64,000 bases of DNA from Hemiscyllium ocellatum (taxonomy: Eukaryota): assembly GCF_020745735.1 (NCBI RefSeq), contig NC_083407.1, positions 68,377,857-68,441,856 of the forward strand, given 5' to 3'. Within the stretch, counting starts at the first letter, position 1, and each line of letters starts with the position of its first letter. Under the pieces are notes generated by a model. The model saw only the letters and a program-made list of their open reading frames with translations. It searched no databases and had not been told where the DNA came from. A program made the position numbers and the translations under genes. Of this stretch, positions 5,674 through 55,970 are shown piece by piece.

Positions 5674-6918
5674 ATTGGTTAATGAGATCACATGCCTGGC
5701 TTATGTGTGGCTAAGCCGACGCTGTAAAAGTTAGTATTGGTGTTAAACTGCGGTCTACTGTACGCGTGTATCAGCAAATCTCGTAAAACCGACAATAAAA
5801 GTTCTAACACTACAAATCACTCAACAAACTGTGGACTTCTGGCTCCATTTTATTTTTCTCTGGTTTGAAGGCTGGGGAAGAAAGCAACATCTTTGGTTGC
5901 CTAATAACCTTCCAACATTTCGCGAATTTTTTTCCTTTATCAGCAATTACGCCAATTTAAATGTCAATAATATCAGTGGGCACGTTGCTTATAAACTTCA
6001 ACCTTAAGAATCGGGAATTTCGAATCTCCACCTTTGCGCAGGGAGATGAACAGCATGGCCAATCTGAAACAATAAAGACAAATTGATAAGAACAAACAGG
6101 AAACAATTAGAGGGGAAAATGCAAACGTTGTGTTTCAAATGTGAACAAACAATTAAAAGACCTTGTTTATTTTTAAAACTAAAAATAGCACTCTGCATTT
6201 TGTGGCGAGTTCGAGAATCCACTGAGATAATACAAACATCTCTGATTTTCGAAACAACTTCAGACTTGTAATTGAATGGAATTCTCTGTGTTAATAACTC
6301 AAAGTCATACGACCGCAATATCCTCACTGTATCAGGTATAGTCAGATATGAAGCAACAATTAATTAATTGAAGATAGAGATTTGAGCAGTTGGGGAATCC
6401 CAGTTTTGGAGCTGTATATTGGTAATTTTACACATTTGAATGTTAATTGCATTATGTTTTATTTTAATGCAAATAAAATTTGTATCCTATTTTAAATAGC
6501 AAACTAGCTATCCGATTGCAATATAGCAATCATTTTACAGAATAAATCGACTCTAAATAAATTGGAACAGACTTATTTTTAATTGCATTTTCGAACAGGA
6601 GAGGATCATATTTGTCCAAAATTAAGTATTTCTTGACTGTCTTTCACATATTACCAGGATTGTTTTAAATGTGTGCATGATTTTTCTACGATGTTCAATT
6701 TCATCAAAAAACCACAAATTTTGAAGTTCAACAAATCAGTGTGAAACAGGCTATATATGTATATTTTTAAATGCTATTCTGCATTTGCTCCAATTGCAAA
6801 TTGAATCATCAAATCCCCATACCAGCGATCAGGAAGGGATTGTACAATGACGGTAGAACGGGTCTTATCAAGTATTTAGATTAGCAAAGAAGAATCGCAA
6901 GTTTTCACTGAACGAATT
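5674..6918 (+). pseudogene. Putative decayed HoxD7 (promoter, 5' UTR, ATG>GTG at 5831, donor 6336, homeobox fragments 6827-6918)
   Basis: 5737-5833 closely follows the HOXB7-type 5' UTR (AATCTCGTAAAACCGACA.TAAAA...CTACAAATCA...CAAA.T-ATG) as recalled. 6873-6899 reads YLD*QRRIA versus YLTRRRRIE, and 6907-6918 reads TERI versus TERQI. Lies in the collinear position. Confidence 0.7.
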
Positions 6919-8184
6919 GTGCACACAATGGCGAGGCTTGTGGGTGGAATTAATACTTTGAAACGGGCATTGCTTCTGAATTGTTGCTTACAATTCCCGG
7001 TCAATTTGGGTCTCGAATAAAATCGCTATCGAAATTCCTCCCCCATCCAGTCTCCAAACCCAGAAAGACTTTTCCAGTTGTCCTGTTGAAAGTTTTATTA
7101 ATAATGCATGTTATTTTGATGTAACCTTGATAATAGTCTTATCATTTTCATAAATTAAAAATGAGAACTCGTCCCGATTCTGGTGATACCGTTTTGGATT
7201 TTCACCGTAAGATCACTTCAAAACACCGCAGCAAAGACAGCCTCGTGCTAGCCCTTCTCTAGAGTTAAATCAGCGGTAAGCATGGGATAATAGAGAAACT
7301 TGGAAAGCAAATATCTAGCAGACATGCTTTCCTTCTAATGCTCGAAGTTCCCGTGCATGCAACACGGTGAAACCGTAATTACCGAACCCGCTCACGGACA
7401 TTGAAGGAAAAATATACCGAACCAACTGATTCAAATGCTTGCATTCACGCCTAATCTGTTAACGCAGCGCCGAAGCTATTTTAGCCGATTAAGCCAAATC
7501 TTATGAAGCACGAGAATTTATAATGCCCATTTTCTCCCCACAGTGGACACACGAGGACTTTAATGCCGTGCTCCATGTCATTCGGCCCCTACATATGCAT
7601 CTATTTACTGTTCTGTTCTGACCTGTGCAAAATGCATCGTACAAAGCTTCGAATAAGATACAACTTTCCTTGAGATTTTGATTGTTATTGGAAGGAAGGA
7701 CGGAAGGCGCCGCAGTTTTGTTGCGTATTTTACAGACGCTTTTGCTTAGTTTATTTTGCTTTCTACTTTTAATTAGATCTTATTGAATGGAATGAGAAAG
7801 TCGGGAGGAAACGAAAATAAGTTTTCTAATACGTAACTGGCAGCAGTATATATTCTTGGTATTACCGCTTTATTATGTTTTTGACGAGATTTAATTTCAA
7901 AAATGCCCATGTCTTCACTTGATACATCTATTGGATGTATTAAAGAAGTAGCGATTAACAAACAAATTGTAACGATTTGTTTGCTGCACTATAGAATGCG
8001 CCCCGCATTGGTTGATATTCCACTTGATGTTGTCGCGGTATTTCCGCTGATATAGTTAGTTAAGACGTTCGTTACAATACATATTGTAACAAATAGCTGT
8101 AGCAAAGAACTCGTTAAAGGGAACATGGCGCTTGCTAGCTATACTTGTGAAATCCGCAAGGAATTGCTGCGAATTCCTTTTTGT

Positions 8185-8290
8185 TTGAAGAAAATTTACA
8201 ACTTTGTAATGGACCTTTTACGACGGAGCCCGTGATCCTATTGGCTGACATTGGTCATGTGAATCTAGTAACTGCGTTCATGGCCTTTTC
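8185..8290 (+). promoter_or_regulatory. Conserved Hox8/7-6 intergenic element (resembles the four-cluster sequence); probable promoter of a non-coding first exon ending at donor 8658
   Basis: TTTACAACTTTGTAATGGACCTTTTACGAC, inverted CCAAT at 8240, E-box CATGTG at 8256; GG|GTAAGT donor at 8658. Confidence 0.65.
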
Positions 8291-11200
8291 ATGATTTCCC
8301 TTGTGAATATTTCACTGCATTCCGCTGCTAACTCGTCTCAAATCGTCTTTTCTGTCAGTATCTCCTCTTGCCTGCTTTTGTCGTTGGTATTTGACGCCAG
8401 CTGCTTGCAAAAAAAGGAGACTTTCTGCTGTATTCGCAGTGTCCAGTCCTTTTCCGTACAACTGTGAGGAAGTCATTCGTCTCATGCTGGGATTCAGCAA
8501 CCTAATCACTCTCACAGAGCTCTGACGTCTGTTTACAGTCTTCCATTTACCCTTCAATTTTCGCCTTACCTTTTTCAAGTTATTTTATTGATCGAAAAAG
8601 TAGAAATGGAATACAATATCAGGCTGGTGACTGTATTGGGGAAGCGCCCTAACCCGGGTAAGTGCTATGCTGTTTTAGCTCTGCTGTTGCAAATCATATT
8701 GCTGTAAATGGAAAGCCGGAAAAAGGCGTTTGTTTCATTCGCTGGATTCTGGGGAACTGTTTCTGAGATGGTGCGCTATTGAAGCTAAATGACCCCAGCA
8801 CGGGTTTGAAAACGGTCCGAACGAAGCAGGTCCAGGTGGTCACTGGAATTCATATGGCGGCTGTGGCGCAGATTAATTAAATATTTATTTCCCGCAATAG
8901 AACGGAGTGCTATGATTCGTGGCTGTCTTTGAAATGAAGGCTTCGCCACACACAGCTGATATGTTTTCATATGATCCAGAGCAGAGATGAATCAGAATGT
9001 GTAGCGTTGTAGTAGGATAATTAGTAGTGCTATTGCAAATTGCGCGACTTGGGTTTTTTTTTCCGGGAGCTAATGATTGGCGGTTTCAGTTTGTTTCTGT
9101 CTGCTATTTTGCATACAAGGATATGTGTTGAACGTCATCTGTAATAAGAATTAGGTGCAGAGATGAATGATATGCATTGCCTTAATCCTAATAATTCCGT
9201 GCAGCAATCACAGAAGCGATCAGAATTTTGGAGATGTGTTTAACCAGCATTTTAAATGATGTCTGACCACGTGACGGAACTTTGCACAAATGAGTGATAC
9301 TCTTCCAATAAGTGCCCTGCAATAGATAGCGGACTGTGCTCTCAATATACTTGTAATGAACAGGGGATCAGGAAAAATTTCTAACTGCGTCTATATTTGC
9401 AATGTTTAAAATATTAGCAGCTCAACCATCCGGTGATTAATTTCCCGCAAGTTGTCCCCAAATTGGATAGCACATTTTATTAAAACTGTAGGGTCTTCAT
9501 GCGGGAAATGTTTTTAGTTCGGAACCAACAGCTCCAGTCCATGTTAAGTGAATTCACAATGCAAAACAGAATGATCACCAAAAATCGTGGAATTCCTTTA
9601 CTTTGTTGTGGAAGTTTTTCTCATTATTAGCGATTTAACTGCAAAATCTTGCTGCAGACGTATACCTAGAAAGGTGGAAGGGGGTGGTTGTGTGTGCGAG
9701 ATATTGTCATCAGGAGATGAGCTGATCATATATCATTTCTGCAATTTCCCTCGGCAATTATTTGTATGTATTTTTTCCAATTATTAAATATTCGGAGAGG
9801 ATTGCTTAAATTGTTTTTGACTGTACATCAAAATTGCACTCATTTGAAATGTATGCTTATATTCATAATTTGAAAATTGATTTGTCTTTCAATCTTCTTT
9901 TAGTGAAAACGGATTAAACGACTATAGTTTGACCATCCATTTTGTGCATAGTTATAGCGATCTTGATTTGTTGTGCATCTGTCGCCTATTTGTATATGAA
10001 AATAGTATTAAACACCGAACAAAATGTCTGTCTATCTATCTAACGTATGGACCAACAGACATATTGTGAAAGTGAAAGCGAGGCTGTTCAAAATGAAGCT
10101 AGAATCAAAGAGTGTGCATCGATAGCGTAACATGCGCAATTTCATCATAGTCTTTATAACGTTGTGAATGTTTCTATATTAAGTATTGACGTTTTTTAGT
10201 CAAAACTCACAAACAGCAATGTACGTGCACTCGAATTCTATCAGTTTTGAAGTTTTAGTATTATTTTAGCTATTGGCAAAGCACTTGCAGGTTTACCCTA
10301 ATTTTCAAGCAATATTTGACAGTAATTCTGTTCATAATACCTTTTGTTTAATTCTCAATGCATCGCCCATCTTCATTCCAATTTGTCAGGCAATTATTTT
10401 ACAGACTTTGAAAATCAAGCATTATTTGCCTCCATTAAATAATTAAATGAGATAAGGTTGTTCAGGTATAATTTTCGTTAAAATAAAGCTGATTTTTCGG
10501 AGTTACGTGACTATTACACTCTGCACTTTTTACAATGTATGAACAGACTGAAAAGTGATTTCGCAGATTTTTCTTAATCATTCGTAATTTAGCATGAACA
10601 CATGGAAAAAGAAAACTGAGCAACAGTAATGTCACTGTAATTAAAATTACCAGAAAGCGGATATTTGTTATTCAGTTCATTTTCTAGTTTTAGAATCGAA
10701 TTATTTAATTTTTGTTATTATGCGTCATGTCGTCGTGGTTTTGCTAAACCGACTAAAGTACGCAACAGGCACCGTTGTATCTGTCTCTGTGTGTATACCT
10801 ATGTGTGTGTGAATATCTGCCTATCTGTTCGCTTGTATGTGTAATTCATACTAAGTGTCCAATTGTGCATTTAGAAACGCTACCCGAAAAAGTTTTGCTC
10901 ATATTACATCTTCGGTACCAGCCATGCTCAAAAATAATTTCCAAATGATTTCAGCATAATAGCAAAATATTAGAATCAATAATTTCAATGAAACATGTTT
11001 CATTTAACTTCTGCAACAAAAGGTGGTCTGATTCCCAATGCCAGTTCGCATTAAACCATTTATTGCACTGCTTTTATATTGGCATCTCGTTGTGAAAGTA
11101 AGTAAATCTTAATGCAAACACTTCGCACAGATTCGAGGGAAATGGTCTATTGCAATCTCAAAGACAATTCGATCCTCGTAGTTTTGGCAAACCAACGAAT

Positions 11201-12313
11201 TTCCAGAACGCGATCTTCTAAATTTTGTCATAAGGGAGACGCACTGGAAAATGACAATCAACAAAAATGAATTAGTATGTGATGCACGCAATAATTTATA
11301 CTTTCCATTGTCAGAGCATAATTCACAATCGTGCCTGGTGAAAGGGTAAAATATTTGACTGTTGGGTATTCTATTTCAAAAGTTTCAAGAGTACAAATAT
11401 TCGGTAAAGTAGAAAAAAAATCGTTGTAGTCAGCAGCAAAAAGCCATTCTATTCCATAACGTGTACTGTAAGAACGGCCTGATTTGTTAGTGCAGGACAA
11501 AGACAGTATTTCTGTTACCGACTGTCACATGGCTGCCGCAGCCTTAGATTTACGAGCTTTAGACAGAGTCAGTTGGACAGTGTCGCAACTCTGTTCTTCG
11601 AACAGAATTGCAAGGGTGCACAAATCAAACTTCACAAAGGATAAATAAAACCATCCCCATAGTCTGGCATTTTATTTAAAATGCACTTGTTAAAATATTA
11701 TATTTTGACTTCTTAAGCTATAAATTGTAATCCATGATTGATCTGGAATCAATGCACTTTTAATGAAGGCCTATGCAGTTCCACCTTGAAACCGGGGCCT
11801 AGAATAAATACCTGGGGTCTTTGTGGGTTGATGTTGTATCCTGGCATGGATTGCACGGGCTGTGATTACAAACTACAATAATATTTCCATTGAAACTTGC
11901 TTAGACTTCAATTAATTGGTAATACTTTAGCCCTTCAATTCTTAAAAGCTCGGGTGTAATAAGTAAAAGTAACTCAATTCTCCAGCGCTGCAAGTTGTCA
12001 GGGTAAATAACATCTAAATGTTCCTGCGATAGAAAGGAAATCAAATTCTGTACGGTTTTGTATGAGAAACTAGTATGTGTGGGTGGGGCGGTCAAAACAT
12101 AAACCCGAAGAACCCTATTTTGTTGCTAACCGATGCACTGACTAATCTGTAGGAACACCCTTTTTTTGCCAAGAAAAAGAAACAAAGCATTGATGTACTC
12201 CACCTGTTTGAAAGATTACTGCCATTCTGAGCGGATCTTTGTAAGAAGTCCTGCAAGGCCCGCATTATCACGGTCGATGTTTGACACCTTTGTCCTTCAT
12301 TATCAACTCCTTT

Positions 12314-13152
12314 ACAAATCGCAATCTAAAATTTATACGCAGCCTATTCGTCAAACCGAAAAAGAAAAATCTTGATTACAAATACTGCATTTATTTCTCG
12401 GTTCGTTTCCTTGCCGTTCTGGCTGGTTCAGATTGTTTGGATCTGCGTGGCAGAGAACGATAACAGAGCAAAATTGGAGCCTACACGATATCATTTGGAA
12501 ATCTGTATATATTTACCCGAAGGCCATCTTTCCACAATTAAATTTGTTTTAATTCCATCAGCACCTACACAGGATTATGCATCAGGTATCAGAGTTTTAG
12601 ATATATGCCTCCATCTAAGTAAAACATAGATTGTACAAGGGACAACTGTAGTAACGTTCACGAGGAATTCCGCGGCGAAAATAGAAATAAACCCTATACC
12701 ACGCCCGCTTAGCTTCTTAGTCGATTCTGGTTGGTTTCAGGGTCGACTTAACCAGTCACAAAATAAAATACCATGTTGGTCTGTTTCTTTTTAAAAAAAA
12801 GATCCCCAATCATAACAGACAACACACAATTATCCAGAAACAGGAATTTCATGGGCAAATTGTGGGATTGCCTGGACAAACTAATGGGAAACTTTGTGAA
12901 TGCGCAGTGTATGTAGATATCAACGTAATGTGGAAATAGCTGTGCGCTGTGTTCTACGAAAACGACATTGTAATCGTTATAGGTGTTGAAACCCGGGCTG
13001 TGTGTGTAAGTGAGGGAAGGCTGCCTCTGTATCCTATACAGGGATAAGCTGTCTTTCAGGAAAACGAACTTTCCCTAAATTGTTGCCTAAAAGGAAGAGA
13101 AGTTAAACATCCTAAACCTTGGACTAAAAATCAGAGTCGGATATCGAGAAGA
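12314..13152 (+). pseudogene. Putative decayed HoxD6 (start remnant 12337-12358; linker and homeobox remnant 12997-13152)
   Basis: ACAAATC...ACGCAGCCTATTCGTCAAACCG resembles ACAAATC...ATGAGTTCCTATTTCGTCAACCCG (MSSYFVNP). 12997-13024 reads AVCVSEG..GC versus HoxA6 AVYGSHGRRGR. 13060-13146 reads ENELSLNCCLKGR---EVKHPKPWTKNQSRIS versus [32 protein letters not shown]. Confidence 0.7.
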
Positions 13153-13675
13153 TTTACTTGTTATTTATTTCCATTTATGCAGTTCGCCACAAGCAAATCA
13201 TTCTTTTCAACCAACATCAAGCTAAAGGATTAAATACATGATTAATACGAAATAAACGTTTTAAATTGAATTGAATTTAAAACGTTAATTGTGTTACAAA
13301 ATATTTTGAATTATTAAGGTGTAATGCTGAATAACAAACGGATCAGATCAACGTCTGTAGTTTCTTAATATTGTACCTATCGTCAGCACAAACCAATTCC
13401 ACAAATTACTTTACATATGCATTATACACAAACCTATACACTTACAAACTTACTAAACAGGAAATTTTTACTCGCATACACATTTTGTGTCTGTGTTCCT
13501 GTATATGTCGTCAGTTAAATAAAATCGAATTTCAGGTAACAGAAATCAGCTTTCATACCCAAGGTTTAACAGGGTTTTAAGTGTGAACCATTTTACAAAT
13601 AAACCTATATGGAAAATAGGTTGCAAAGTGTGAACCTATATAAAGTGCTGATGTGAATCTGGCTTTCCTCATGTT

Positions 13676-13694
13676 TGCCAGCAGGGGGCGCTAC
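13676..13694 (+). promoter_or_regulatory. CTCF site at the Hox5|6 boundary position
   Basis: TGCCAGCAGGGGGCGCTAC is a consensus CTCF motif about 250 bp upstream of the HoxD5 ATG. Confidence 0.85.
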
Positions 13695-13729
13695 AGGATC
13701 ATGCTGGCTAAATCATAGCAAGTATTCTC

Positions 13730-13830
13730 ACTGCATGAATTACCCCCAGGGTCAGGCACAAGAATTTACGACTGGTCAACAAAAGCACGTGATCTAAACT
13801 TGTGCCCCATATTTGGTTGCATACGTAGAA
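13730..13830 (+). promoter_or_regulatory. Conserved paralogue-5 proximal promoter
   Basis: GAATTACC...AATTTACGACTGGTCAACAAAAGCACGTGAT block typical of Hox5 promoters; E-box 13786-13791; CArG-type CCATATTTGG 13807-13816. Confidence 0.75.
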
Positions 13831-13937
13831 AGCAGAGAAATGACATGTGCCTTTTATTTCCATATTTCATTATATATCGCTCGGTCTAGTGCCGAATAAA
13901 CGTCTAAGAACCACAAATCAAAACCCGTTAAAGGCAG

Positions 13938-15060
<1,123 letters not shown>

Positions 15061-16584
15061 CCTGTTTCATCCTAATTCTGGCTATACAATATTACTGTCC
15101 AGATGATCTTTTAAGTTGCAATAGGAAAGGTTGTTTGGCCACATTAGGTACTCCTCTATGAGATGCGTTTATTAATACGTTGTTCTCATATGGGTACAAC
15201 GTCTTGCTATCAATTTACCAAGAAAAGAATACAATTTATCAGTTGTCACCAACAGATGTTAAATCATGTTTTTATACATTGATGGTAATGGCCATGCCTA
15301 AATTTAGATTATAAGAGAAAGAGCGAGAAAGGGGTCAAACGACTTAATGTAGCCAAGCAAGCCATTTATCTCTTGAGAACAGAATGAAGTTGTGCTGTAT
15401 ATCTGGTTTCTGAACAAACGAATCCCATACCGGAATAGAGCTTCGCTAAGATTTTAAATTAATAATATTTTATAAACTTAGATGAATATTGTTCCTGTCA
15501 TCTCTTTTTACATCAAACTTTCTTTTGTTTGATTTTGCCTTGGAATGTTTATGGCACGAGTGTTGCTGTGGTCCCAGGTATATATGTCTTGTATATTCTG
15601 TACAGATATAATGTCTGAATGTCTGACTTTGTCCTATGTACATGAAATAAGTGAGTTTCTTTTTGCCTACATTGAAATAAAGTCAGTTTTATCAATAAAT
15701 ATTTCACCTGGCGTTTGAACTCTAATGATGTGTAAAAAGGCGGACAATTGGTTTCTTGTGAAAAGACAAAAAGCCATTCACTTTCTCATTTTACACCTAT
15801 TCGGTTTGACACCCAAGTTCTCCGAACACTAGCCCCAATGCTTCAGAACTCATAAAAGTTCCTTGGGTTGAACCGTCTTTCAATTTTTTCTGAATTAGAA
15901 AAAAACATTATTGTTGGCAAGAACTGATGGTCGAGTTCATACTATTCCAATAACTTTATTTAATTAAAGAATATGACTCATACTTCAGAAACTCGGCAGC
16001 TCGACTACAAACACGTCAAATGTCCAAAGATAATTTCACAGATTTTACTGAATGGAAGAATAATTCGAGTTTGTTTTTATTAATGGATGTTGACATAAAT
16101 ACTTAGGAAAGTGATGCCGCAATTTATAGGACGTATTGCATAAATTATGTTACTTATAAGAAGGATTTGCAGCAGTATCCATTGCATAGAATAATTTTCC
16201 ATGCTAACTTTTCTGAGAATATTTGTGTTCCGAAAAGCAGAAGGAAATAATAAGCCGTCGAAGCGACAGAAATAGGGAAACAAAGTCATAGGTAGCAGCA
16301 ACTGTAAAAAGACTTGTTTCTCCATTCTCAGTCCACCTATATCTATTTCACTGTAAGTTAGAAGCTATCAGTCACGTATATTTGTAGGGTATTTGCACTT
16401 ACCAAATCGTCTAGATCCCCTTGGCTGCATAAGAACTACTGTCCATATTGCGTATTAAAGTAAGGGCAGCTTATTCTCCAAGGCACGCTTCGTCTGGGTG
16501 CTCAGACGTTTGGCTTTATATTAGTGGGAGAGCATTTCGATGAACCTGACTGTCTTTAGTGAATAAAAGTTTTAAAGTTTAAGG

Positions 16585-16850
16585 GTTATTTATAGGGACG
16601 CCACAGAGCAACGTCCTGACTGGCTACGGAGGGGCACGTGATGTCATTAAACTTTGTTTTATGGTTTGGGAGTTGACAAGCCAAAATATAATTCACATCA
16701 TATATTAGGTTAAGAGCAGACAAGTGCAGATGGTTAGTGTTTTTGAGAGGGTCCGTGGAAAGTGACACCAAGAAGCAAGCTGTCCTGTTCCACGGTTATG
16801 ACTTGGTAGTGTTCTCGTGTCCTGGTACTTTCGCACTGGAAAAACCGCAA
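16585..16850 (+). promoter_or_regulatory. Conserved Hox5-4 intergenic distal promoter and probable non-coding first exon (donor 16851)
   Basis: ACTGGCT-N-GGGGCACGTGATGTCATTAAACTTTGTTTTATGGTTTGGGAGTTGACAAGCC block; CAA|GTAAGT donor at 16851; positionally like the distal Hoxd4 promoter whose transcripts span miR-10b. Confidence 0.65.
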
Positions 16851-22230: not shown

Positions 22231-22312
22231 GTCGTCTATATATACCCTGTAGAACCGAATTTGTGTGATGTTTCGGTCACAGATTCGTTTCTAGGGGAGT
22301 CTATGGTCGATG
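22231..22312 (+). ncRNA. MIR10B: pre-miR-10 (miR-10b type); 5p mature 22243-22265, 3p about 22279-22300
   Basis: TACCCTGTAGAACCGAATTTGTG is exactly miR-10b-5p; complementary arm ACAGATTCGTTTCTAGGGGAGT; canonical position 5' of Hox4. Confidence 0.97.
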
Positions 22313-23529: not shown

Positions 23530-23657
23530 CCTCGCCATTGGCTCGTACAGTCACATGGGTGACTAACTTTATTCAGTTGACAGCAAGTAGGAGGGCTTTA
23601 TGGAACGGGAAAAAAGACAACTCGAGAAAAATTAGTATTTTCCACCTTCAGAAATTA
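23530..23657 (+). promoter_or_regulatory. Conserved HoxD4 proximal promoter and 5' leader
   Basis: ATTGG 23537 plus CACATG 23552; CTAACTTTATTCAGTTGACAGCAAGTAGGAGGG...CCTTCAGAAATTAATG is typical of Hox4 leaders. Confidence 0.75.
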
Positions 23658-32719: not shown

Positions 32720-33155
32720 ACTTACTGGCTCAATCAGAACAATCTGGTAACACAGATCACGTGAACAAATATGCCTGTATCTTAAGGCAGTGCCTATATT
32801 TTCTGATTATAAAAGGTATCCGTTGCACTATAAAATTCATAAATTGCAACTTTTTAAAGGAATATCTACTGGTTTATAAATACCAATTGTTCGTTGGATG
32901 TTCGATTATAAAGTATCGGTTTAGATTTAAAAGCTAAAGCATTACTGGACACCGTTTTTATTGGTAGTTGTCCCTGAGACCGAAGCCATTTCTATCGGGA
33001 ATAGCGTCTGCATTTGGTATCGAAATGTCTGTAAAACCGCAAGATCTGGTTTAAGGCAGCATTGTCTCCAGACAAACGGCAGAGGATGTTATTCGCAGCT
33101 GCAGGCTAAGAAATTGAGTTTGAGAAGCATAGATTTATGATAAATTGACACACAG
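32720..33155 (+). promoter_or_regulatory. Distal HoxD3 promoter and probable non-coding exon 1 (donor 33156)
   Basis: TCACGTGAACAAATATGC...TAAGGCAGTGCCTATATT...GATTATAAAAGG block resembles conserved Hox3 distal promoters; TATA-like TATAAAA; CAG|GTAAG donor at 33156. Confidence 0.7.
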
Positions 33156-39245: not shown

Positions 39246-41453
39246 AACAGAGATGTAATTAAAATTCAGATAACTAAGCAAAGGACTGCAATGTACTAAC
39301 AATTTTATTAAAACGGCAAAATGGATCGAAATGAATTCAGGATAACAGAAGAAGACAAAATATACGACACACAACGAGAACAAAACAGTTAGAACAGAAA
39401 AGAAAAACATTGACTTGTTTCTAAAAGGAACAGCTGAAATGTGCACGTGTGCCTGACTGCAACTTTGGAGGCCGCAGATCATAAACCTCATATTTCATTA
39501 GAATGTCAAGTCTTGTATGGCTGAAGGCTTTTTCTAAATGAATAGAAAATCTATTTGTGACGTGATATAGTATCTAGATAAGTCACACGTCCAATGGCTA
39601 TGATGGTTTCTACAGCAATATGTGTTATTTAAATAATGTTGCAGATTAAATATTATATATAGAACACTGACCAATCACTTTCTTGTAATTTCAAGTATAT
39701 TTCACAGTAGGTTATTTTAATACACCTTTTGATCATTTAATTACAGACACAAACAATTTCCGACTTTAAGATATATCTTAGGGAACCTAATTTGGACTAC
39801 AAGATACCATGCCACAATCAAAATATCTTGGCTTTTTTGGCGGGACCCCCCACCTCATGCAGACGTGGACTTGTTGGGAACGCTACTCGCAATGTTAATG
39901 CGAACTTGTAAAAGTCTTTGATGAGAGATTGGTTGAAGTAAAATGCATTTTTTTTGTCAAAATAAAGTCACAAATGAATAAGGAATATTTAGGAAGTTGG
40001 TATTAGGGTCTCAAAACAAATAAATCTATACAGAAATAAATTAGAAAATATGAACATTTAAACAGTTTGTGTGCTATCACGTATTTGAACAGCTGTTGCC
40101 ACAGCCAAAGAGCTTGATCTGCGTTGTTTCAAAACAATTGTAATATTATGAACGTTTATTGACGTTAAGAGAGGTTCTGTTAGCAAAGACTAAACCTGCA
40201 CTCATTCGCTGCTTCTTTTGGATTCAGTTTAGGTTAGTTTGACTTTTTTTCTGTCGTACATGTTCCAAAAAGATCATCACATCCAGTTACATGTGCTATT
40301 TTGTTGCAGACTGGTGCCTAAACAAAAGCCGATGTAAGCAGCAGAATGCAGATGTAAAATGCTGACTTGCTCATTTCTCTGTTTTAATTCGAACAAAAAG
40401 ATTGAATAGGTGCTAGTTATACTTTAACTACTTTGCCTGCCCGCTGTCATAAAACAGAAAGATATAACAGAAAGCAGCAGATTCGCTTCACACAAACCTC
40501 TCTTACGTTGAAGAGAAAGAAGGCAACAATGGCGAGGGAACACTTCGTTGGTTTTTCACCTTTTGGAACTGGCCCGATCCATCATGTCCTGTGTAACACT
40601 GTCTAGATCACAGAATAAAACGGTCTGTACCCACAGCAAATGCTGTAGGCAAATAAGCCGCCTGTGACTATGGTATTTTCGTTCTTTTTAAGAAGGGTCT
40701 TTTTGTTTTTCATCATTATATAAGTGGCCTCAACCAGTGAAGCCATCTGGAATAGCACTGTGTGTCCCACCGAAGTCCACTTACATCAAGAATCACTGGG
40801 ACATGTTAAGCGTTTTTGACTTCCAGTGTTGTAGAATAGTAAAACTACAGTGTAAAGCTGATTGTTATCTATATGCTGTGAAATATTTCAGATGATGGAG
40901 ACATTTTATTTCATGTCTGGTATGCAATTACTTATTGTCAAACATCAAAAATAGCGTATTTATGAAGAAAGAATTCCATCTGGTAGGCATTAATCGATTA
41001 GTAATGTATTATGTATTTAAATATTAGTAAACTCCAATGAAGTGTAATGAAAGAGCAAGAAGTCGAACTATAAATGTTTCCAACAATTTGTTTTCAATAA
41101 TCATTTCAAGACTGCATTCACAATTTGAAATTAATTTCTCGGAAATCAAGAAAGCATCAAAATGTAAAATAAGTTGTATTATAAAAGTCTTCCAGAAGTT
41201 GTTCAATAATTTATTCTGAATTTCAGTAACTTATTAATAGTCCCGTAAGGTCAATCACAGATTTGCAGAAGGAGGGGAAACCTATTCTTCTAACAACGTA
41301 TAATGGGACTTTATGGATTGGATGCGACTTTTATGTTGTACACTCTGAATTAGGAGTTCCTAATGTTTTACATTATTGTCTTTTGCCTCGTTAACTAAAG
41401 GACTGCTGCAGACTTGTGATTGGTGGAATAGTGTCACGTGATCGAAAGTGTCA

Positions 41454-44400: not shown

Positions 44401-44612
44401 TTGTTGATTCAATGCCAGCTTCTGGTCCCATGTTCAACCTTAGCCATCTTCCTCATCCTTCATCAGCTACTGTGGACTATAGCTGTGCTGCTCAAATACC
44501 GGGCAATCATCATCATGGACCTTGTGATCCCCATCCTACATATACAGATCTGACTCCTCATCACACATCTCAGGGAAGAATTCAAGAAGCGCCCAAACTA
44601 ACACATCTGTAA
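41454..44612 (+). CDS. HOXD3: Homeobox protein Hox-D3; coding exon 41454-41937 (second ATG 41502), exon 43864-44612; about 410 aa
   Basis: D3-type N-terminal extension MLFDKG...[11 protein letters not shown]; [13 protein letters not shown]; homeodomain [61 protein letters not shown]; PG3 C-terminus [13 protein letters not shown]; phase-1 GT-AG intron. Confidence 0.96.
42058..42415 (+). mobile_element. tRNA-derived V-SINE (HE1-like) in the HoxD3 intron
   Basis: tRNA-like head (actgctgcctcatagtgccagcgacccgcgttcgactcc), V-domain (ttctccccatgtttgcgtgggtttcctctgggtgctcc...tccaaagatgtgc), LINE-derived tail (gatgggtcgaatggcctgcttccacactgta...ttctatgat). Confidence 0.88.
42833..42999. mobile_element. 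Short Penelope-type fold-back insertion with a 13-bp target-site duplication
   Basis: Inverted arms 42833-42862 and 42935-42964; TSD CCAGTT(T/C)TAAGGT at 42820-42832 and 43000-43012; degenerate hammerhead-like motif on the minus strand (CTGACGC...GAAACGTTA). Confidence 0.75.
43044..43388 (-). mobile_element. CR1-clade LINE 3' fragment in the HoxD3 intron
   Basis: The minus strand encodes [13 protein letters not shown], the CR1 ORF2 C-terminal motif, followed by a typical 3' tail. Confidence 0.85.
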
Positions 44613-47512: not shown

Positions 47513-47545
47513 TTGTCATTGGTTAATGCGATCATGTGACGATAA
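47513..47545 (+). promoter_or_regulatory. HoxD2 proximal promoter (inverted CCAAT + E-box)
   Basis: ATTGG 47518-47522 and CATGTG 47533-47538, about 170 bp before the ATG. Confidence 0.65.
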
Positions 47546-47701
47546 AATCAGCCTCATCTCAACATCGTGTCTGTGTATTCAATAGACATAGTTTAATAAT
47601 AGCACGGTCCCTTAACGTTTGTAATCAGTACATTATATAAATATACATTTTCAAAGAAACTATTTAATAAGCAATTTTCTACCGATTCTGCCTGGGCAGA
47701 A

Positions 47702-49194
47702 ATGAACAACGAGTTTGAGAGAGAGGTTGGTTTTATCAATAGTGAACCATCGCTTGCCGAGTGCCTGACATCCTTTCCTCCTGTTGGCGAGACATTTCAA
47801 AGTTCATCAATCAAGAACTCGACGCTTTCACATTCGACACTGATTCCTCCTCCTTTTGAGCAGAGCTTCAGAAGCTTGGACCATGGTAACACAAACCAAA
47901 ATGAGAAAACGCACACTTCAAAAAGCATTGGTCGGGCCACGTTAGGGGACAAACCTCTGGAATATCCGTGGATGAGAGAAAAGAAAAGCCACAAGAAAAA
48001 ACCTGTCCAAGCAACGGGATCATTCTCATCTTGTTCTTCTAATGAAGGTCAGGTCCATCATATATTTCATTACTTTTTTTTAGGGGGGGAGCGGAGGTCG
48101 TGGTCATATTTGGTGAGCAGAGAATATTTTTTATAAAGGATTACATTTTAAAGCAGTAATAAATGTTTCATTGACTGAAAGATGTCAGACCTGAAAAACG
48201 CACATACCCCAACTATATTCAAAACGTAAACAGTGCTTGCTGGAGCCTACAGAACTCCAGGTATTCTGTGAGTATCAATGACCTGCACATAAGCAAATTC
48301 CAGACATCTGTATCTGTTTTCAGTTGCCCTGCTGGGCCATTTTCTGCTGGAAGCCTTTTGTGTCTAGGAGGCGGCCATTTTATGTTGCTGGATTATTCGC
48401 AAAGATTTGTGATAACTTATCGAAACTTTCCCCTCCTTACTGCAGAAAACGAAGAGGTTAATGAGCCGGACAGTGGGAGCCCTTTTGACAGCTCCAGGAG
48501 ACTACGAACCACTTACACCAACACTCAGTTGTTGGAGCTGGAAAAGGAGTTTCATTATAATCGCTACCTTTGCAGACCACGGAGGGTAGAAATCGCAGCT
48601 CTTCTCGATCTAACAGAAAGGCAAGTCAAAGTCTGGTTTCAGAACAGACGCATGAAACACAAGAGACAAACTCGATTCAAACAAAGCCAAAACACCGATT
48701 CAAAGCGCCATTTTGCTAACAGTGTTAATCAGAATGGGTTTTCCACAAGAGGCTTTGCTGAGACACCTGTAAATAAAACTTTGAATTCGTTAGAGAGCGA
48801 CAAAAATGCTGAGCAAGATATTAGCGATTCTGCTCATCAAGATACATTAAGTGATATCAGCAGTGACCTGCTCACTGTTATTGGCACTTCTCTGATCTGC
48901 ACCGAGGAAACCCATTGTCATTATTTCCCCCAGAGCTCAGATGAAACTGACTCCCTGCTACCTATGCTGAAAAACTGCTCGGCTGGAACAAGTCCTAGCA
49001 GTCCTGAGAGTTTCAGCATCCCATCTCTGGAGGATTTAGACAAAATTACAATCGAACCACGTCTAGATCTGATAGACGAATTACCTCAACTATCTTTGTT
49101 GGAAAACGAGGACACACTAGTTATTCCATCCAACGTATTTGACTTTATAAGTGACAATTTTAACTCCACCGATTTTCAGCAATTGCAGTTTTAG
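47702..49194 (+). CDS. HOXD2: Homeobox protein Hox-D2; exon 1 47702-48047, exon 2 48446-49194; about 364 aa
   Basis: [25 protein letters not shown] (PG2 N-terminus); EYPWMREKK; G|GTCAGG donor and CAG acceptor in phase 1; homeodomain [59 protein letters not shown]; C-terminus DFQQLQF. Confidence 0.92.
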
Positions 49195-52100
49195 ATCGAC
49201 ATCCAATTCACGCGCACATAAGCACTGTTGATATTCTTTAACAGTGATAATTCCAAGAACTATATTACTAAATGGAAAGTCATGGCATTTGTTACATGCC
49301 TACAGATCCTAGAATTTAAGGATCTCCTGCTCATGTGTTCATTCTGCTATGAATCAAATGAAACGAGTCCTGAGAAATTTCATGAAGTGCAAAAAATAAA
49401 GTATTTTCAGTATTTTATTTTAAATAAGGTGAATATTTCAAATATTTACAGATTTTCAAAAACTAATTACACATCTTTAAAATACAATTTATAAAATAGC
49501 TTTGTGTAAAAAATATGAGTTAGCGTGAAAATATGCAAGGAAAGGTAAACATCCAGACACTGCTGATTGCATTCAATTCAATAGTTGAATTGTCTTCGTC
49601 CAAAGTTCCAATCAGCAATATTCCTAGAAAATAAAACAAAAAGATAATCAGCAACCAAACAACACAAGTGATAATAATACCAAGTGAATAAAAACGATTG
49701 CTTATGTCAAAATGTCATTATATACAGGGATATATTGGTTGTCATGGAAAGTGTATTATTAAATTATAGATCATCTTCCACGATTTTCCAACAATGCCTG
49801 CAAACTATTTAATGCTTTAAGAAAATATGGTTTTGATAAACAATAAGACTGGATTTCTCAAACTACGCCATGGGTTTTACTTAAGTTTAAATACTAAAAT
49901 AATTTCAAATATTTAATTAGCTGACATGGAAATTGAAAAGGGAGGCCAACAGGACTGATTATTCACACCCAGAAAAATCAAATTGATCGTTTTTCAGAAA
50001 CTCAGTCATTACAGAAATGGAAAAACTGGTACTAATCACAAGCACACGATGGATGTCATAATTCGGCTGAGGCATAAACCCATAAAAGACGCCATTTTGT
50101 TCAGTCGAATCAAATCCGGGAGCTGAATAAATCAGTGCATTTATATCCTATTTAGAGGAGTTGGAAGGAAGAAAATATCTCTAGCTGCAGCGTTCGAACA
50201 CGGGCGCGGTGGCGAGACCGGTGATGTTATAACTACATCATAAAATATAACAGATCGAGTAATGATGGCCGCTTGAAACACGTATATTTACAATTTTATT
50301 CTACTTGGATTTTATTTAGAAATTCACAATAGGTTATCACTAGCTGTGAAATATTAAGACCCAAAACAATTCGACTAGAATTAGATAGGATATCTGTGTA
50401 AAATTGTCAGCTGCGAAAGATGTTTAAAATCAAGCACATGCTGATGGAAAATTTATTGATATTTAGTTTATATTTACCAGATGACAAGTACTTCATCATG
50501 AAAAAAGTTCCGAATGAATAAATAACTAACTGTAGCAACTGAATAGAGTTAAATGTAATCTGTTGCATAAGATCTATCCTGCTAAACAATTGGCTGCAAT
50601 TTGATCTAAAAGTTCTTGTATTTTAAACCACTTAGCAATTGGATTCACGATGCGGTGAAATCTATTGAGCATGTTATTGCCTTTAAATGGCATATAGAAG
50701 AGAAATAAAATGCATCACAATCTAACCCAGAAATTCACGAGTTCCTTCGAAGGCAAGATGCAATTTATCTTTCTGTTTCATTAAGGGGAATACATGTGCT
50801 TTCCAAACATTTACTTAAGTCTGCTTGCAGCGTCATCAAACAAAGAATAACACTCTATTTTGAAAGAAGTACCTCTATTTCCCTTACACACCCACGCAAA
50901 TTGTGTTAGCAGTTGTTTTTATTGTGTCAGACAAGGATATGTTTCAAAACGCCTAAGTTCCACGTTTGTAATGCCCAATAAATATTTAATTTTTGAATTT
51001 TTTTATTTTATGTACTTCATTTGCAGGGAAAATAGCGTAGTGTGAACTTTCTAAACGTAACTGTCTGCTTTGTTAACATGAGACAAGACAGTGCACTTTA
51101 TGTGCAAAGGCTAGAGGAGTCCTTGCTTTGTCGTTTCGCATTTCAAGATTAAGTGCTGTAATATTAAAATTCCAACGTTTGTATTAGATTTGGTTATTTA
51201 CATGGCGATCTTAAAGCACTTTAGTTCGCATATTCACTCGGATAGTACTATTGAAATTATTAGTTCAGAACATTTTGGTTTAAATCTGTGCAAGAAAAAT
51301 CCAGATCTCGTTTTGAATGCTATACCGAAAATAAGGAACAATTTTCTATTTAGTTATTTATACTAGTCGGCCTCCTTGCCGCTTTATGTTTGCATTCTGA
51401 GGCCTGTCGAATAAGTTATAAGTTCACGTAGTTCTTTCTGCAATTTCATGTGTTGTATTATGGTGCTGCTATGGTGAGGTCATGCCTTCACAATTCAATC
51501 ATAATAACAAGTGACATTTTGACCTTGCATAAATTATGACGTTTATACTATTTCTATTAATACAAAATATTGCACGTTTTCCAAATATTTGAAGCATTCA
51601 GCCGTAAAGGAAGGGTAGGTTTTGTGTTTGTTGTTCCTAGTAATAACCAGCAGCTCTCCAGGAACACTTGAGTAAAGGATCACGTGGTAGCAAGATCAGT
51701 CATCATATTTCATGTTTATGTGAGCAACTGCCTGATATATTTACAGCCAATATTTCCGTTCATTTTGCAAAAGTGATGGCTGCAAAAGTGCAATTGTAAA
51801 TGAAAAGGAAAGCTCATTTGGAATTTGAAACAACGCACGAACAAACAGGGAGTTTTGCTGAAAGACTTGCAGCTCTGTCTGGACGCATAGCTGTCAGTGG
51901 GGTATTGTTAAGAGTTCATCAATCATGAAATCTGCACTTTTCCCTCGACAGCAGTTCCTCCCTCTTTAAGGCAAGCCAAGGCCAGCTGGGATCCCTCCAG
52001 CAACCGCTGCCAAGGCGGACAAATGCAAAAGCGAATCACACACCAGTCTAATCACACCACAGACGATACCTCCTGTATGACTAACCTTCGAGAAATCTGG

Positions 52101-55100
52101 AGTCTAACTGCGATCCCTCGTTACTGCTCGTTAAAGAGGGTAAAACGTTTCAAGGGCACCAGAAATCTTGGCTCAGCTGAGAATGCTATGTGTGCTTAAA
52201 TTATTGTCATGTATGACTGCATTTGTGGTATTGGGTCATTTACGTTAACCTTTTAAAATATGTCACTAATAGATGTGTTTTCAGGAATCCCTAACGTATA
52301 AAACCTCGTACATTATATTTTATTTACAACCCACTTTTGCTCTGGTCGATCCACAGACCAGTTAATGGTGAGCTAATCTAGTCGCTTGCACAGTTGGTTC
52401 AGTGCAATCTCTCTATTTTTTGAATGCACTTCCGTGCTGTTGCTCGACAAAGGTTCAGCTCTATTTGCGAATGTAGAACGGCTAATGGCAACTCGCACCA
52501 AAACAAAATGCAGGAAACGCGCAGTCAGTTCAAAACAAACCTGAGACTGGTGACAACTTTCAAAAAATGGAAAACAGTCCTGGTACTTTTCTCGATAATT
52601 GATTTTGAGTCCGCCCCTGTCACTTTCAGAGATTGAAGGCCATCGTCATCACCACCATCACTGACCCCCACTACTCCCGCTCCACCACCCCCAACCGCCC
52701 CATACATCCCGGTCAACATATTACAAGGCTAAGATGGAAGCTAACCTTATGAAAAGCTGGGTTCTAAGCAAGGCACTGTACAAAATTTCAGATATAGATA
52801 GTGCACAAGATACAGCATTAAATAGTCCTAAGAAACCATAGGTTAATCCTGATGTTTATTTGGAAGACGTTGCCCCAGAATCATTGGCTAGTTGCTGCTA
52901 GGACAGCCAGGTCCGGTTTTCTCAAGATTCTTGATGATCCAACATGCAAATCGATAAGGTTTTACTGAAGTGAACATATGAAAGTACCGTGTCGTACAAA
53001 TGCAGAAACACGTTCCGATTTGGAAATGGTTCCGCACTCTACTGCAATGACTCCACATATTCGACTAAAACAAGTCTGCAGTATTCTTCTGACCGTTTAC
53101 ACGAGGCTATCTTCAATCATATGCCCCTGAACAGGTTAAACCACATCATCTACTTTCAGAGCTGATTGCACCTCGAAGAATAGTCGAGTGCTGACAAAAG
53201 TTACGAAATATACGAGTCAGAAACCGTCCATTCTTTACAAAAAACATAGTTAAGTGTGATGAACTTAAATTGCTAAATAATCAGTTAAATTGCACGGAAG
53301 TATTGCGTGCAACTGTCAAAAGAAAACAATATTCCAATCAAATTCTTTCATTATTTCAAAATGGAATCCATGAACTTCAGAAGAAATTGTGGAAACTGAA
53401 ATGTGTTGATTTTGTATTTATAAACTCCACGTAAACAAACACAATGATAATTCACAAAGCTTTGTAATTTTCTAATTAGAAACCATAATGTGTTATATTA
53501 TACAAGTTCGCATATGGAAAGCTTACTATATTCATTCAGTAATTTTGTGTTCTATGTTTAGGCCATTGTTTAGATTGTGATACCAGTGAAATGAACAGGT
53601 ATTTCATTTATATTACTATTCCAGGCAGTAGCTCATCTGATCGGTCACTAATGATTGATATTGCATTTGAAAGAAGTGGATTATATCCCATATAGCTATA
53701 ACAAAGTTTGGTACTTTCTACCAATTTCTAATTTCTAATTTTAAGAAATCTGGTAAATAGGACTCAATATTAGTAGATTGTGATTAAACAGAAACATAAA
53801 TTGTGCAATGACCAATTATTTTTAAAATATTGCTGTTAACACGTTATTCGAAAAAGGATATGCCAGATTTATGATTTAGTATACATCTTTTAAAGTAAAA
53901 ACTGCAAAGATATGTTAACAAAATAAGACAAATATGAAGTCAATAGGAAGGCCCGATGCAAATGCTGAATGGTATATGCAGGAATTTAGTCATTTGCAAA
54001 TTCCGCGGCAACTGTATGCTTTCAAAGTCTTTAAACTCACTTCCCCCTGAATTATACATAACATAGCTTTACAAGATCAGATTAAAACTGCTGACCGCAA
54101 AATGAACAAGGCAGGTTTTTATATGAGCAACAGAAAAGCAACTGGAATGTCATTACTCAAACCCTCTCTTAAGATTTAGTTGCGAGGAAAGTAAAGTGTA
54201 AACTCAAATTGATGCTAACTTAAAAAAGGTACAATGAGAAGTATTCACTTGTAGATACACAGACAGACAGAAAGTGCTAATCAAAAGATAGGCAAAATAG
54301 ACACGTTGTGCTGTAGGTAGATGGGTTTTAGATTCCGAACGTGAAATACCGAATATATATTATCTGCTCTTTATATGAATGGAGAAACTTCGTTCAAACG
54401 ACTCTAATTCTATGTTTTACCAAATGAACGAGTTAATGACACGGCACCTAACAAGCTGCTGATATGAATTTGACTGCACACTGCCCCTGGCGATTAAACA
54501 GAGCAAGTCGTCTTGTGCTATATACACTCACATCAACTGACTTTGAGTTAGAGCTTCGTTACTGAGTGTTCTGACAGGTAAATGACTCTGAGTCAACCGT
54601 CATCACGGAAATAGACTAGGGGAAAATATTCACAAACCCAATAGCCAAACGATTCAAATACTTCGATTTGCTTATAAATTTCCCGAAGCACTTGTAATTG
54701 TTCAGTTCGCGATTTCATTTATCAGACTTTGCATTTTGGCCTTAACGAAAGTGATATGTCGCAGTTCGTATGGTCTCACCATTTAACTTTATTCTGTAGC
54801 ATGACATAGAGGGATGTACACACCAGGACAAATGACTTGAGAATGGGTGGTGAAATAAACAACCCAGTCATCAACGCGTTTACCTTTTGTGTCAGCCATT
54901 TGTGTTAAAAAGTTAGTTGAAATATGTTGATTCCTGATGTAAGCATATTTCTGGTAGTTTACAACGTCCGGTGTTATTAACGAAAGTTGACAGGTTGCCG
55001 ATTATAAAGGAAGGAAGCTCTATATTCTTTATATCCCTGTCAAGGGGACGGTCAGCCTTCTCTAGTTGTTTAAAGAGGGTTCAACGGGTCTGATGGTAGG

Positions 55101-55265
55101 ATTTCTAAAGTCACAAGTACACCGTACAGGCAATTGTACTTTGGACGTTTATTAACACTTCGAAATTTTAACGATGTCATAAACATATCACTTTATGTAA
55201 CTATATACTTCATGGACCTGGTTATTATGCCAGTTAGTATGATTTTACAGAAAAATAGCACATAA

Positions 55266-55406
55266 CTGTGTTCTGGGAAGGGTCACCGGGCCCGACACGT
55301 TAACTCTGATTTCTCTTCACAGATGCTGCCAAACCTGCTGAGTTTTTTCCAGCAACTTATGTTTTGTTTCCGATTTACAGTATCCGCAGTTCCTTCGTTT
55401 TTTTTT
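55266..55406 (+). mobile_element. Penelope-type short repeat with a degenerate hammerhead core, 0.7 kb upstream of HoxD1
   Basis: ttctgggaagggtcaccgggcccgacacgttaactctg...cagatgctgccaaacctgctgag...ccagca resembles abundant elasmobranch Penelope-derived repeats (from recall). Confidence 0.7.
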
Positions 55407-55927
55407 AAAGAAGCAAGGCTGTTTGCTGGCGGTGCTTTCCAAACTGCACACGCAGGGATAGAGGTAGTGCAATGCTATAAACTCAACTTCAGAGACCATT
55501 TGCTTTGTTATTTCACGCTGTGTTCATTCTAGATTTCCTGGTGCTGTAATTATTGTAACTAATTCAGTGGAGCTTGTCACGATTGTACTCCTCCCACCCC
55601 TCCCCCTTTCGTGATCGTTCTAACGTAAACTAACCAAGTCTACTGACAGAAGACTGCGTGCTTTACTGTAAGCGCCACGATCACACAACTCAAGTCTCAC
55701 ATTTTTCCGCGGCGGTTACACTCCGCCCACACTCAAAGCGACTATCTTACCTTAGGACGGGCTATCGGAGGATCGTTCGCTGTATGAGTAACGTTAGTGA
55801 ATGCCTCTGCGGGATGTGCTGATGATGTGATCTCAGTGGAAGGTGAGCACTGGAAGAGTCCACTCCTCTCCGTGGATCAGCAAGGAACTCCGGACGCCAT
55901 GGCATCGCGCTGGCGACGGCCGCTCTG

Positions 55928-55970
55928 ATTGGGTGGCTGGAGCCACGTGCCTGCCTTGGTCTATATTAGG
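55928..55970 (+). promoter_or_regulatory. HoxD1 core promoter (inverted CCAAT, E-box, TATA-like)
   Basis: ATTGG 55928, CACGTG 55944, TATATTA 55962. Confidence 0.7.

Follow-up and report, generated by a model that had tools for sequence, protein, structure and literature searches.

The promoter of human HOXB4 depends on two short elements. Mutating HxRE-1 (ATTGGCT) costs 60-90% of promoter activity and mutating HxRE-2 (CACGTG) costs 90-98% (Giannola et al. 2000, PMC2193192). Yeast one-hybrid and gel-shift assays in the same study detected MITF on the E-box; as activators of the promoter, USF-1 and USF-2 were effective and MITF was not (PMC2193192). NF-Y is reported to sit on the first of the two boxes in a complex with USF (Zhu et al. 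2003, as cited in PMC3675019). Here we describe a pairing of this kind, an inverted CCAAT pentamer followed after 10 or 11 bp by an E-box, across the HoxD cluster of the shark Hemiscyllium ocellatum. The stretch analyzed, referred to as the window, comprises 64,000 nucleotides (NC_083407.1, forward-strand positions 68,377,857 to 68,441,856, assembly GCF_020745735.1) and is filled by the HoxD portion from D8 to D1, with every gene on the plus strand.

The geometry of such pairs has been described genome-wide in human cells. Chromatin immunoprecipitation sequencing (ChIP-seq) placed the E-box at -12/-11 from the first C of CCAAT in an orientation-specific manner, and this arrangement held at USF1- and MAX-bound sites, not at MYC-bound ones (Fleming et al. 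2013, PMC3730095). Besides promoters, NF-Y and USF1 were also found at enhancers and in unmodified chromatin (PMC3730095). A later paper gave the distance between CCAAT and E-box as 10-12 bp (Dolfini et al. 2016, PMC4889920).

Hox clusters also contain promoters that lie far from the nearest coding start. The D2 start of mouse Hoxa5 falls in the Hoxa7-Hoxa6 interval, 2.3 kb past Hoxa7 and 4.5 kb before exon 1 of Hoxa6. It belongs to a block of 160 bp, conserved among vertebrates, that contains a TATA box and is an active promoter in transgenic embryos (Coulombe et al. 2010, PMC2868907). P2 of mouse Hoxd4 is an upstream promoter for pri-miR-10b and a long Hoxd3 transcript, and in zebrafish one transcript begins past hoxb5a and covers mir-10c, hoxb4a, and hoxb3a (Phua et al. 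2011, PMC3185001).

Materials and methods

The pattern scanned was ATTGG, ACTGG, or TCTGG, followed by k bases and then by CACGTG, CACATG, or CATGTG, with k from 0 to 30 and on both strands. Chance expectations were obtained from first-order Markov simulations and P values from the Poisson distribution. Since the pattern had been set after viewing the window, it was tested on HoxA and HoxB of the same genome, which had not been used in its definition: 100 kb of HoxA (contig C5, genes A11 to A1) and 100 kb of HoxB (contig C110, genes B10 to B1), giving 264 kb together with the window. Exon 1 of HoxA1 is 98% identical to its counterpart in Chiloscyllium (bamboo shark). Orthologous loci of other species were located via the first exons of shark D5, A5, and A1. 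We use the name i7-6 for the composite between groups 7 and 6 and 3p5 for the composite 3' of group 5. Coordinates with an L prefix belong to the compared loci.

Results

Enrichment, spacing, and orientation

On the plus strand of the window, the pattern occurs five times at k=10 and four times at k=11, and the remaining spacers from 0 to 30 give three matches in total. The minus strand has one match overall. The initial annotation had listed nine composites, and every string was found where it had been placed, with the spacer it had been given. Nine sense matches at k=10-11 compare with 0.21 expected (P ~2e-12), so the composite is far commoner here than in random DNA. The profile was equally sharp in the two clusters held out of the definition, with nine sense matches in HoxA and eight in HoxB against 0.37 and 0.35 expected. 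Other E-box types gave no peak at 10-11 bp in the spacing profile. All 24 conserved shark sites have a spacer of 10 or 11 bp and one relative orientation.

The strictest form, ATTGG-N10/11-CACGTG, was counted across the genome. It has 1068 copies in 3.98 Gb (both strands), a rate that predicts 0.07 copies in the 264 kb; seven were found, all on the sense strand. Among the 17 genes that make up Hox groups 1-5 and 7 here, seven have this form. With an assumed ~20,000 genes in the genome, it could be present in at most about 5% of genes (about 1 in 20), even with each copy placed at a promoter. The control at the wrong spacing, ATTGG-N14/15-CACGTG, was swamped genome-wide by a repeat family and, therefore, the genome-wide excess at 10-11 bp is bounded rather than measured. 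The family responsible is dispersed, contains ATTGGAGGGCATCTTTAACCACGTG, has roughly at least 2,000 copies, and swamps motif counts at spacer 14.

Positions shared by three clusters

Matches in HoxA, HoxB, and HoxD fall into the same eight positional classes, namely proximal sites at groups 1, 2, 3, 4, 5, and 7, plus i7-6 and 3p5 (Table 1). The pentamer lies 83-208 bp upstream of the ATG in 17 of 17 genes, which are those of groups 1-5 in all three clusters together with A7 and B7. Because the three clusters have all eight positions in common, each position predates the cluster duplications, and the module was already present at all eight in the single cluster that preceded them. The proposal of an ancestral module is borne out to this extent.

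Some of these sites can be recovered by their surrounding sequence. A 29-bp block around the group-5 composite has exactly three copies in the 3.98-Gb genome, at A5, B5, and D5, with zero mismatches. A whole-genome BLAST search with the HoxD i7-6 block retrieved the HoxB copy (E 2e-12), the HoxA copy (E 3e-9), and no others, and 3p5 found its HoxB copy at E 1e-8.

The site at 32743 does not belong to this set. TCTGG is not a CCAAT box, the flanks are unlike those of the sole comparable HoxA match, and BLAST found no counterpart in HoxA or HoxB. It is probably noise, since about one chance match is expected over 264 kb. The nine sites had been presented as one system, which holds for eight of them.

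Selection on the boxes and their distance

Between paralogues of the same class, the pentamer is identical at 120 of 120 compared bases and the E-box at 142 of 144, whereas the spacer is identical at 93 of 191 and the 10-bp flanks on either side are ~50% identical. Eight of the nine sites are thus under selection that acts on the boxes and their distance, not on the letters of the spacer. Subtypes are also kept by class. CACATG at N10 marks groups 4 and 7, CATGTG at N11 marks group 2 and i7-6, CACGTG marks groups 1 and 3, and ACTGG with CACGTG marks group 5 and 3p5. The E-boxes at all 24 sites are of class B (CACGTG, CACATG, or CATGTG), with a T before them at 19 (TCACGTG, TCACATG, or TCATGTG). 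Perfect ATTGG is found at 18 of the 24, and a pyrimidine stands two positions before the pentamer at every one, which fits the NF-Y consensus.

It had also been pointed out that the ghost-D7 and D2 copies share spacer sequence. They do: nine of the 10 bases at 5679-5688 and 47523-47532 are identical and contain TTAATG. This likeness is not ancestral, as A7, B7, A2, and B2 lack it; the whale-shark ghost D7 differs at one base. It could be due to chance, to conversion within HoxD, or to a homeodomain site gained convergently.

Conservation in other vertebrates

Seven loci of ~21 kb (~150 kb in total) from whale shark, chimaera, gar, bowfin, tinamou, and turtle gave 20 sense matches and no antisense matches at k=10-11, and six sense matches over the other 24 spacers. 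Whale-shark HoxD retains all five composites from ghost D7 to D4. HoxA of chimaera, gar, and tinamou has kept i7-6, a group-6 variant described below, A5, and 3p5, and gar has kept A4 as well. The A2 composite is retained with its flanks in chimaera, bowfin, and turtle. The module is conserved across paralogues and across jawed vertebrates. Turnover was seen at A1, where turtle has the strict form, bowfin has ACTGG with CACATG, and chimaera has CACGCG as its E-box. At gar A7 the first E-box reads CACAAG and the second, TCACGTGA, survives.

Lampreys were examined at the Hox4 locus. In Lampetra, one ATTGG-N11-CACATG, located 655 bp upstream of the ATG, is the only match in 28 kb; 0.004 would be expected within 1 kb upstream. 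Petromyzon has none within 10 kb upstream. A tandem repeat in this Petromyzon locus (L028) produces 39 and 35 spurious pairs at spacers 1 and 18. Simple repeats abound in the 16-kb intron and in the region upstream of the ATG, and they may have erased or displaced the proximal promoter.

Orphan and intergenic sites

Two of the eight sites, ghost D7 and i7-6, lie where HoxD has lost its genes. A MAFFT alignment with A7 and B7 showed that ghost D7 keeps the composite and three blocks of the group-7 5' untranslated region (5'UTR), and that the old start has changed from ATG to GTG. In A7 and B7 a second TCACGTG follows six bases past the first E-box; the ghost has a decayed TTATGTG there. The i7-6 composite lies 1.9-2.7 kb past the group-7 stop and 4.8-5.3 kb before the group-6 ATG where those genes exist (2687 and 5294 bp in shark HoxA), with a TATA-like run ~30 bp past the shark E-box. 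In relative position, conserved block, and TATA-like element it resembles the D2 start of mouse Hoxa5, a match of position rather than of aligned mouse sequence. It differs in that a CCAAT/E-box composite is unmentioned in PMC2868907 and in that the HoxD copy stands beside no group-7 or group-6 gene. The tinamou A6 gene model starts 213 bp past its i7-6 composite.

In HoxD, 5.6 kb separate the 3p5 composite from mir-10 downstream of it and 7.0 kb separate it from the D4 ATG. Its paralogues lie 1615 bp (HoxA) and 1586 bp (HoxB) past the group-5 stop. Like Hoxd4 P2 and the start of the zebrafish transcript, it is several kb upstream of mir-10 and group 4 and just downstream of group 5. This, too, is a match of position only, made independently of mouse sequence. 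HoxB has a mir-10 at the same relative place and HoxA has none; 3p5 is, therefore, not simply a microRNA promoter. The suggestion that the composite marks non-coding start sites agrees, by position, with two sites, i7-6 as the Hoxa5 D2 start and 3p5 as Hoxd4 P2. Past the 3p5 E-box (16641-16700 of the window, and L006 and L015), GTCATTAAA, TTTTATGG, and GTTGACAA are kept in all three clusters. Their letters suggest homeodomain/Cdx and TALE-type sites, and they are similar to TTGACAG, which is conserved past the group-4 composite.

In the stingray Hypanus sabinus, NCBI models for HoxD5 begin 5.4 kb upstream of D5 and extend beyond the locus, which suggests very long read-through transcription units across 3' HoxD. 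One of them encodes a 444-aa homeodomain product and another a 289-aa product with metaxin-type domains.

Features of the window and variant promoters

The coordinates of all sites and genes are listed in Table 1.

Table 1. Composites, gene starts, and related features of the HoxD window, with paralogous and orthologous sites where compared
Feature	Position	Strand	Remarks
D8 look-alike of group-6 variant (GTTGG...CTGATCTGCGG)	3482-3504	+	Decayed; ~220 bp upstream of D8 ATG; compared by eye with A6 and B6
D8 ATG	3705	+	
Ghost-D7 composite, ATTGG-N10-CACATG	5674-5694	+	Same class as A7 (L007:6144-6164, minus) and B7 (L013:5321-5341, plus); retained in whale shark
Group-7 5'UTR blocks	5737-5748, 5780-5794, 5812-5820	+	Downstream of ghost-D7 composite; from alignment with A7 and B7
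i7-6 composite, ATTGG-N11-CATGTG	8240-8261	+	Both flanking genes lost in HoxD; HoxA L007:1636-1657, HoxB L013:9471-9492; retained in whale shark HoxD and in HoxA of chimaera, gar, and tinamou
D5 composite, ACTGG-N10-CACGTG	13771-13791	+	167 bp upstream of D5 ATG; retained in whale shark, chimaera, gar, and tinamou
D5 ATG	13938	+	
3p5 composite, ACTGG-N11-CACGTG	16619-16640	+	1559 bp 3' of D5 stop; retained in whale shark, chimaera, gar, and tinamou
mir-10 precursor	22236-22307	+	Between 3p5 composite and D4; Rfam RF00104, 69.5 bits
D4 composite, ATTGG-N10-CACATG	23537-23557	+	121 bp upstream of D4 ATG; also at A4, B4, whale shark D4, and gar A4
D4 ATG	23658	+	
TCTGG-N10-CACGTG	32743-32763	+	Probably a chance match
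D3 composite, ATTGG-N11-CACGTG	41419-41440	+	83 bp upstream of D3 ATG
D3 ATG	41502	+	
D2 composite, ATTGG-N10-CATGTG	47518-47538	+	184 bp upstream of D2 ATG
D2 ATG	47702	+	
D1 composite, ATTGG-N11-CACGTG	55928-55949	+	154 bp upstream of D1 ATG
D1 ATG	56082	+	
Group-6 variant at A6 and B6	L006:6491-6513; L014:4106-4128	minus; plus	Also L022 6940, L023 7080, L024 5846

A variant that the initial annotation did not list was found at group 6, where ATTGG-N12-CAGCTG or ATTGG-N12-CAGATG lies ~150 bp upstream of A6 and B6 and is retained in chimaera, gar, and tinamou. It is followed by a conserved GGTTATATT...GCTGCTGTC block that is kept from shark to bird. D8 has no intact composite, its only trace being the decayed look-alike in Table 1. 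A relic of the D6 promoter was sought at 8300-13900, which shows no similarity to the A6 or B6 promoters. Both results agree with the earlier remark that D8 and ghost D6 have no clear copy.

In the sequence examined, no sense-strand copy was seen near the seven genes of groups 8-11 (D8, B8, A9, B9, A10, B10, and A11); the upstream regions of D8, B8, and A9 were read directly. A9 carries a composite that is flipped relative to the gene (CACGTG, N10, then a forward CCAAT), 137 bp upstream of the ATG (L008:5038-5058, gene sense minus). It is the sole posterior-group gene with the module among those examined, and no counterpart was found at B9.

Several promoters have further elements close to the composite. 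The group-5 promoter (13765-13816) packs four elements into ~50 bp, including the composite; a TTTACGAC site, resembling those of posterior Hox or Cdx proteins, abuts the pentamer, and a perfect CArG box (CCATATTTGG) lies 15 bp past the E-box. At A3 (L003:2103-2124) and B3 (L018:2869-2889) a second, forward CCAAT lies 10 bp past the E-box, forming a CCAAT-E-box-CCAAT palindrome. A2 (L002:3695-3716) and B2 (L018:9480-9501) have a second CCAAT 14 bp past the E-box. The second CCAAT has been lost at D3, and D2 has none.

Discussion

We conclude, with a probability of about 0.7, that a single promoter-proximal module of the NF-Y/USF type, made of an inverted CCAAT box and a class-B E-box, has been conserved at eight of the nine sites. 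Read along CCAAT, the Hox E-box comes first, on the 5' side, and ends at -11 or -12. This supports identity with the published NF-Y/USF arrangement, subject to an uncertainty of ~2 bp from the coordinate conventions of the papers. The Hox sites share with the ChIP-seq composite a CCAAT pentamer (at 18 of the 24), a class-B E-box, a fixed distance of ~10-12 bp, and a specific orientation. They differ in including CACATG, CATGTG, and six ACTGG copies, and in being known here from sequence. Many of the human-cell composites also lie in LTR12 repeats, whereas the Hox ones are single-copy, more than 450 Myr old, and located at developmental promoters.

At group 4, the pentamer lies at -121 in D4, -119 in A4, -131 in B4, and -121 in gar A4, and the human HxRE-2 probe spans -129 to -149 (PMC2193192). 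Shark A4, B4, and D4 thus carry the boxes at the equivalent place (119-131 bp upstream), in the same order and orientation as HxRE-1 and HxRE-2. The shark group-4 E-box is CACATG, unlike the CACGTG of HxRE-2 and of gar A4. Both the geometry and the boxes mutated in the human promoter fit the earlier assignment of the composite, HOXB4 included, to NF-Y and USF. The published study concerned HOXB4 in blood cells, not the whole cluster. A 2005 PNAS paper by Zhu and colleagues is said to have extended this work to the HOX4 paralogues.

We infer the binding factors, their cooperation, and the positions of transcription start along the following lines. Of the two grooves of DNA, NF-YA recognizes the minor one and bHLH proteins the major one. 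NF-Y would contact the CCAAT box through the minor groove, and a USF-type bHLH-leucine-zipper dimer would contact the E-box through the major groove, ~1.5 helical turns away. The spacing had been described as one helical turn, which is correct for the spacer from edge to edge; from centre to centre the boxes are 15.5-16.5 bp apart, or ~1.5 turns. With one factor in each groove at this distance, both would lie on the same face of the DNA. The two are expected to bind cooperatively, as shown for human HOXB4, and may form a constitutive platform that keeps the promoter competent. NF-Y would give access to closed chromatin and USF would recruit an H3K4 methyltransferase, with the spatial pattern supplied by enhancers, retinoic-acid elements, and Polycomb. 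A/T-rich, TATA-like elements lie 15-30 bp past the E-box, and transcription would start beyond them, ~40-80 bp past the E-box.

Since three pentamers, three E-boxes, and two spacers were picked after the fact, and one site (32743) does look like chance, we considered whether the whole pattern is an artefact of composition or of loose motif definitions. There is practically no chance of this. The window P is on the order of 1e-12, the pattern was replicated out of sample in HoxA, HoxB, and the seven loci of other species, and the boxes are conserved where the spacers are free to vary. An artefact is refuted for eight of the nine sites. A different doubt concerns the proteins: the sites could be real and selected, and the working pair not NF-Y and USF. 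Another bHLH-zipper protein (MITF/TFE, MAX/MNT/MLX, or CLOCK-type) would then read the E-box, and another factor would read the pentamer at least at ACTGG. That pentamer stands at all six shark group-5 and 3p5 sites and recurs in whale shark as well as in chimaera, gar, and tinamou. The TCATGTG and TCACATG forms resemble an M-box, MITF bound the HOXB4 E-box in the assays cited above, and MAX is stereo-positioned with NF-Y just as USF is (PMC3730095). We consider this improbable, given that the HOXB4 promoter responded to USF-1 and USF-2 and not to MITF (PMC2193192), that the 18 perfect ATTGG sites have flanks that fit NF-Y, and that the published pairs of NF-Y with USF or MAX have this 10-11-bp geometry (PMC3730095, PMC4889920).

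How the module came to be at so many promoters is a closer question. The initial annotation had it copied along with the genes by tandem duplication. We rate this about even with independent recruitment, in which a generic NF-Y/USF module was taken up at several promoters of the single ancestral cluster before that cluster was duplicated, and to which we give a little under an even chance. Unrelated NF-Y sites across the genome of human cells commonly have this geometry (PMC3730095, PMC4889920), and different paralogue groups have nothing in common here except the two boxes. Their subtypes also differ (N10 CACATG in groups 4 and 7, N11 CATGTG in group 2 and i7-6, ACTGG in group 5, N12 CAGCTG in group 6), two non-genic promoters carry the module, and, among the genes examined, A9 has it in flipped orientation and groups 8, 10, and 11 lack it. 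Recruitment has more difficulty with the 17 of 17 genes in groups 1-5 and 7 that share orientation and a similar distance to the ATG, given that the strict form can be present in at most ~5% of genes. The dissimilar flanks are weak evidence in its favor because promoter flanks are not expected to be alignable over more than 550 Myr. The initial annotation also suggested that the ghost-D7 promoter may still fire. For the orphan HoxD copies at 5674 and 8240, it is also conceivable that they are no longer promoters and have been kept as an enhancer, a chromatin-opening or boundary element, or a Polycomb/Trithorax-responsive element. They have no coding gene after them in HoxD, GTG stands where D7 once started, and NF-Y and USF1 also occur at enhancers and in unmodified chromatin (PMC3730095). 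Sequencing runs of the same organism whose type was guessed as RNA contain almost nothing of 5500-11499 or 5730-6930, a null result that is uninformative by itself. Runs of a related organism hold a uniform share of ~0.23 of the words, best read as divergent DNA and not as expression. We think a purely non-promoter role rather unlikely: the group-7 5'UTR blocks past the ghost-D7 composite are conserved, which is easier to explain if they are still transcribed, HoxA i7-6 corresponds by position to a proven mouse promoter (PMC2868907), and the stingray gene models begin in the gap between D8 and D5.

Several observations weigh against an NF-Y/USF promoter module at all eight sites, the 2-bp coordinate uncertainty among them. 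NF-Y requires all five bases of CCAAT. The six shark sites with ACTGG (CCAGT on the other strand), which has the same form in every species examined, lack that pentamer and, therefore, another factor or weak binding assisted by USF has to be assumed there. USF binds CACATG and CATGTG less well than CACGTG, and these two E-boxes are at the same time MITF/TFE-type sites. The module is not invariant, as the first E-box of gar A7, the E-box of chimaera A1, and both boxes of bowfin A1 have drifted, and Petromyzon lacks it at Hox4. Lastly, the 1 kb preceding the Hoxd4 ATG showed no promoter activity in mouse P19 cells (PMC3185001), so one or more of the proximal copies may lack promoter function in some contexts.

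Elements of the same kind as this module were known before, and human HOXB4 already provides proof for the group-4 member. A search of the open literature turned up the HOXB4 work only, and no description of the module's cluster-wide use (groups 1-7), its presence at two distal promoters, or its survival at dead-gene positions of HoxD; most subscription journals, including older Hox footprinting papers, were outside this search. The cluster-wide distribution and the survival at dead-gene positions appear to be new.

As a tentative and rather doubtful extension, we propose that vertebrate Hox clusters have in common an NF-Y/USF-type "promoter licence" that predates the cluster duplications and is confined to the group 1-7 half, plus the flipped copy at A9. 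Selection would act on promoters as units of their own, in addition to the genes. HoxD would have kept the group-7 promoter and 5'UTR, as well as i7-6, for at least 450 Myr after losing D7 and D6, likely to launch long transcripts for downstream genes and mir-10 or to anchor the stepwise opening of the cluster.

Work on Hox regulation centers on enhancers, retinoic-acid elements, CTCF boundaries, and Polycomb, and promoters are usually treated as passive. If the proposal is true, one deeply conserved grammar would serve the anterior and central genes and not the posterior genes examined, giving a handle on the differences in competence and timing between the two halves of the cluster. It would also bear on how neighbouring promoters share enhancers and on why intergenic "orphan" promoters outlive their genes.

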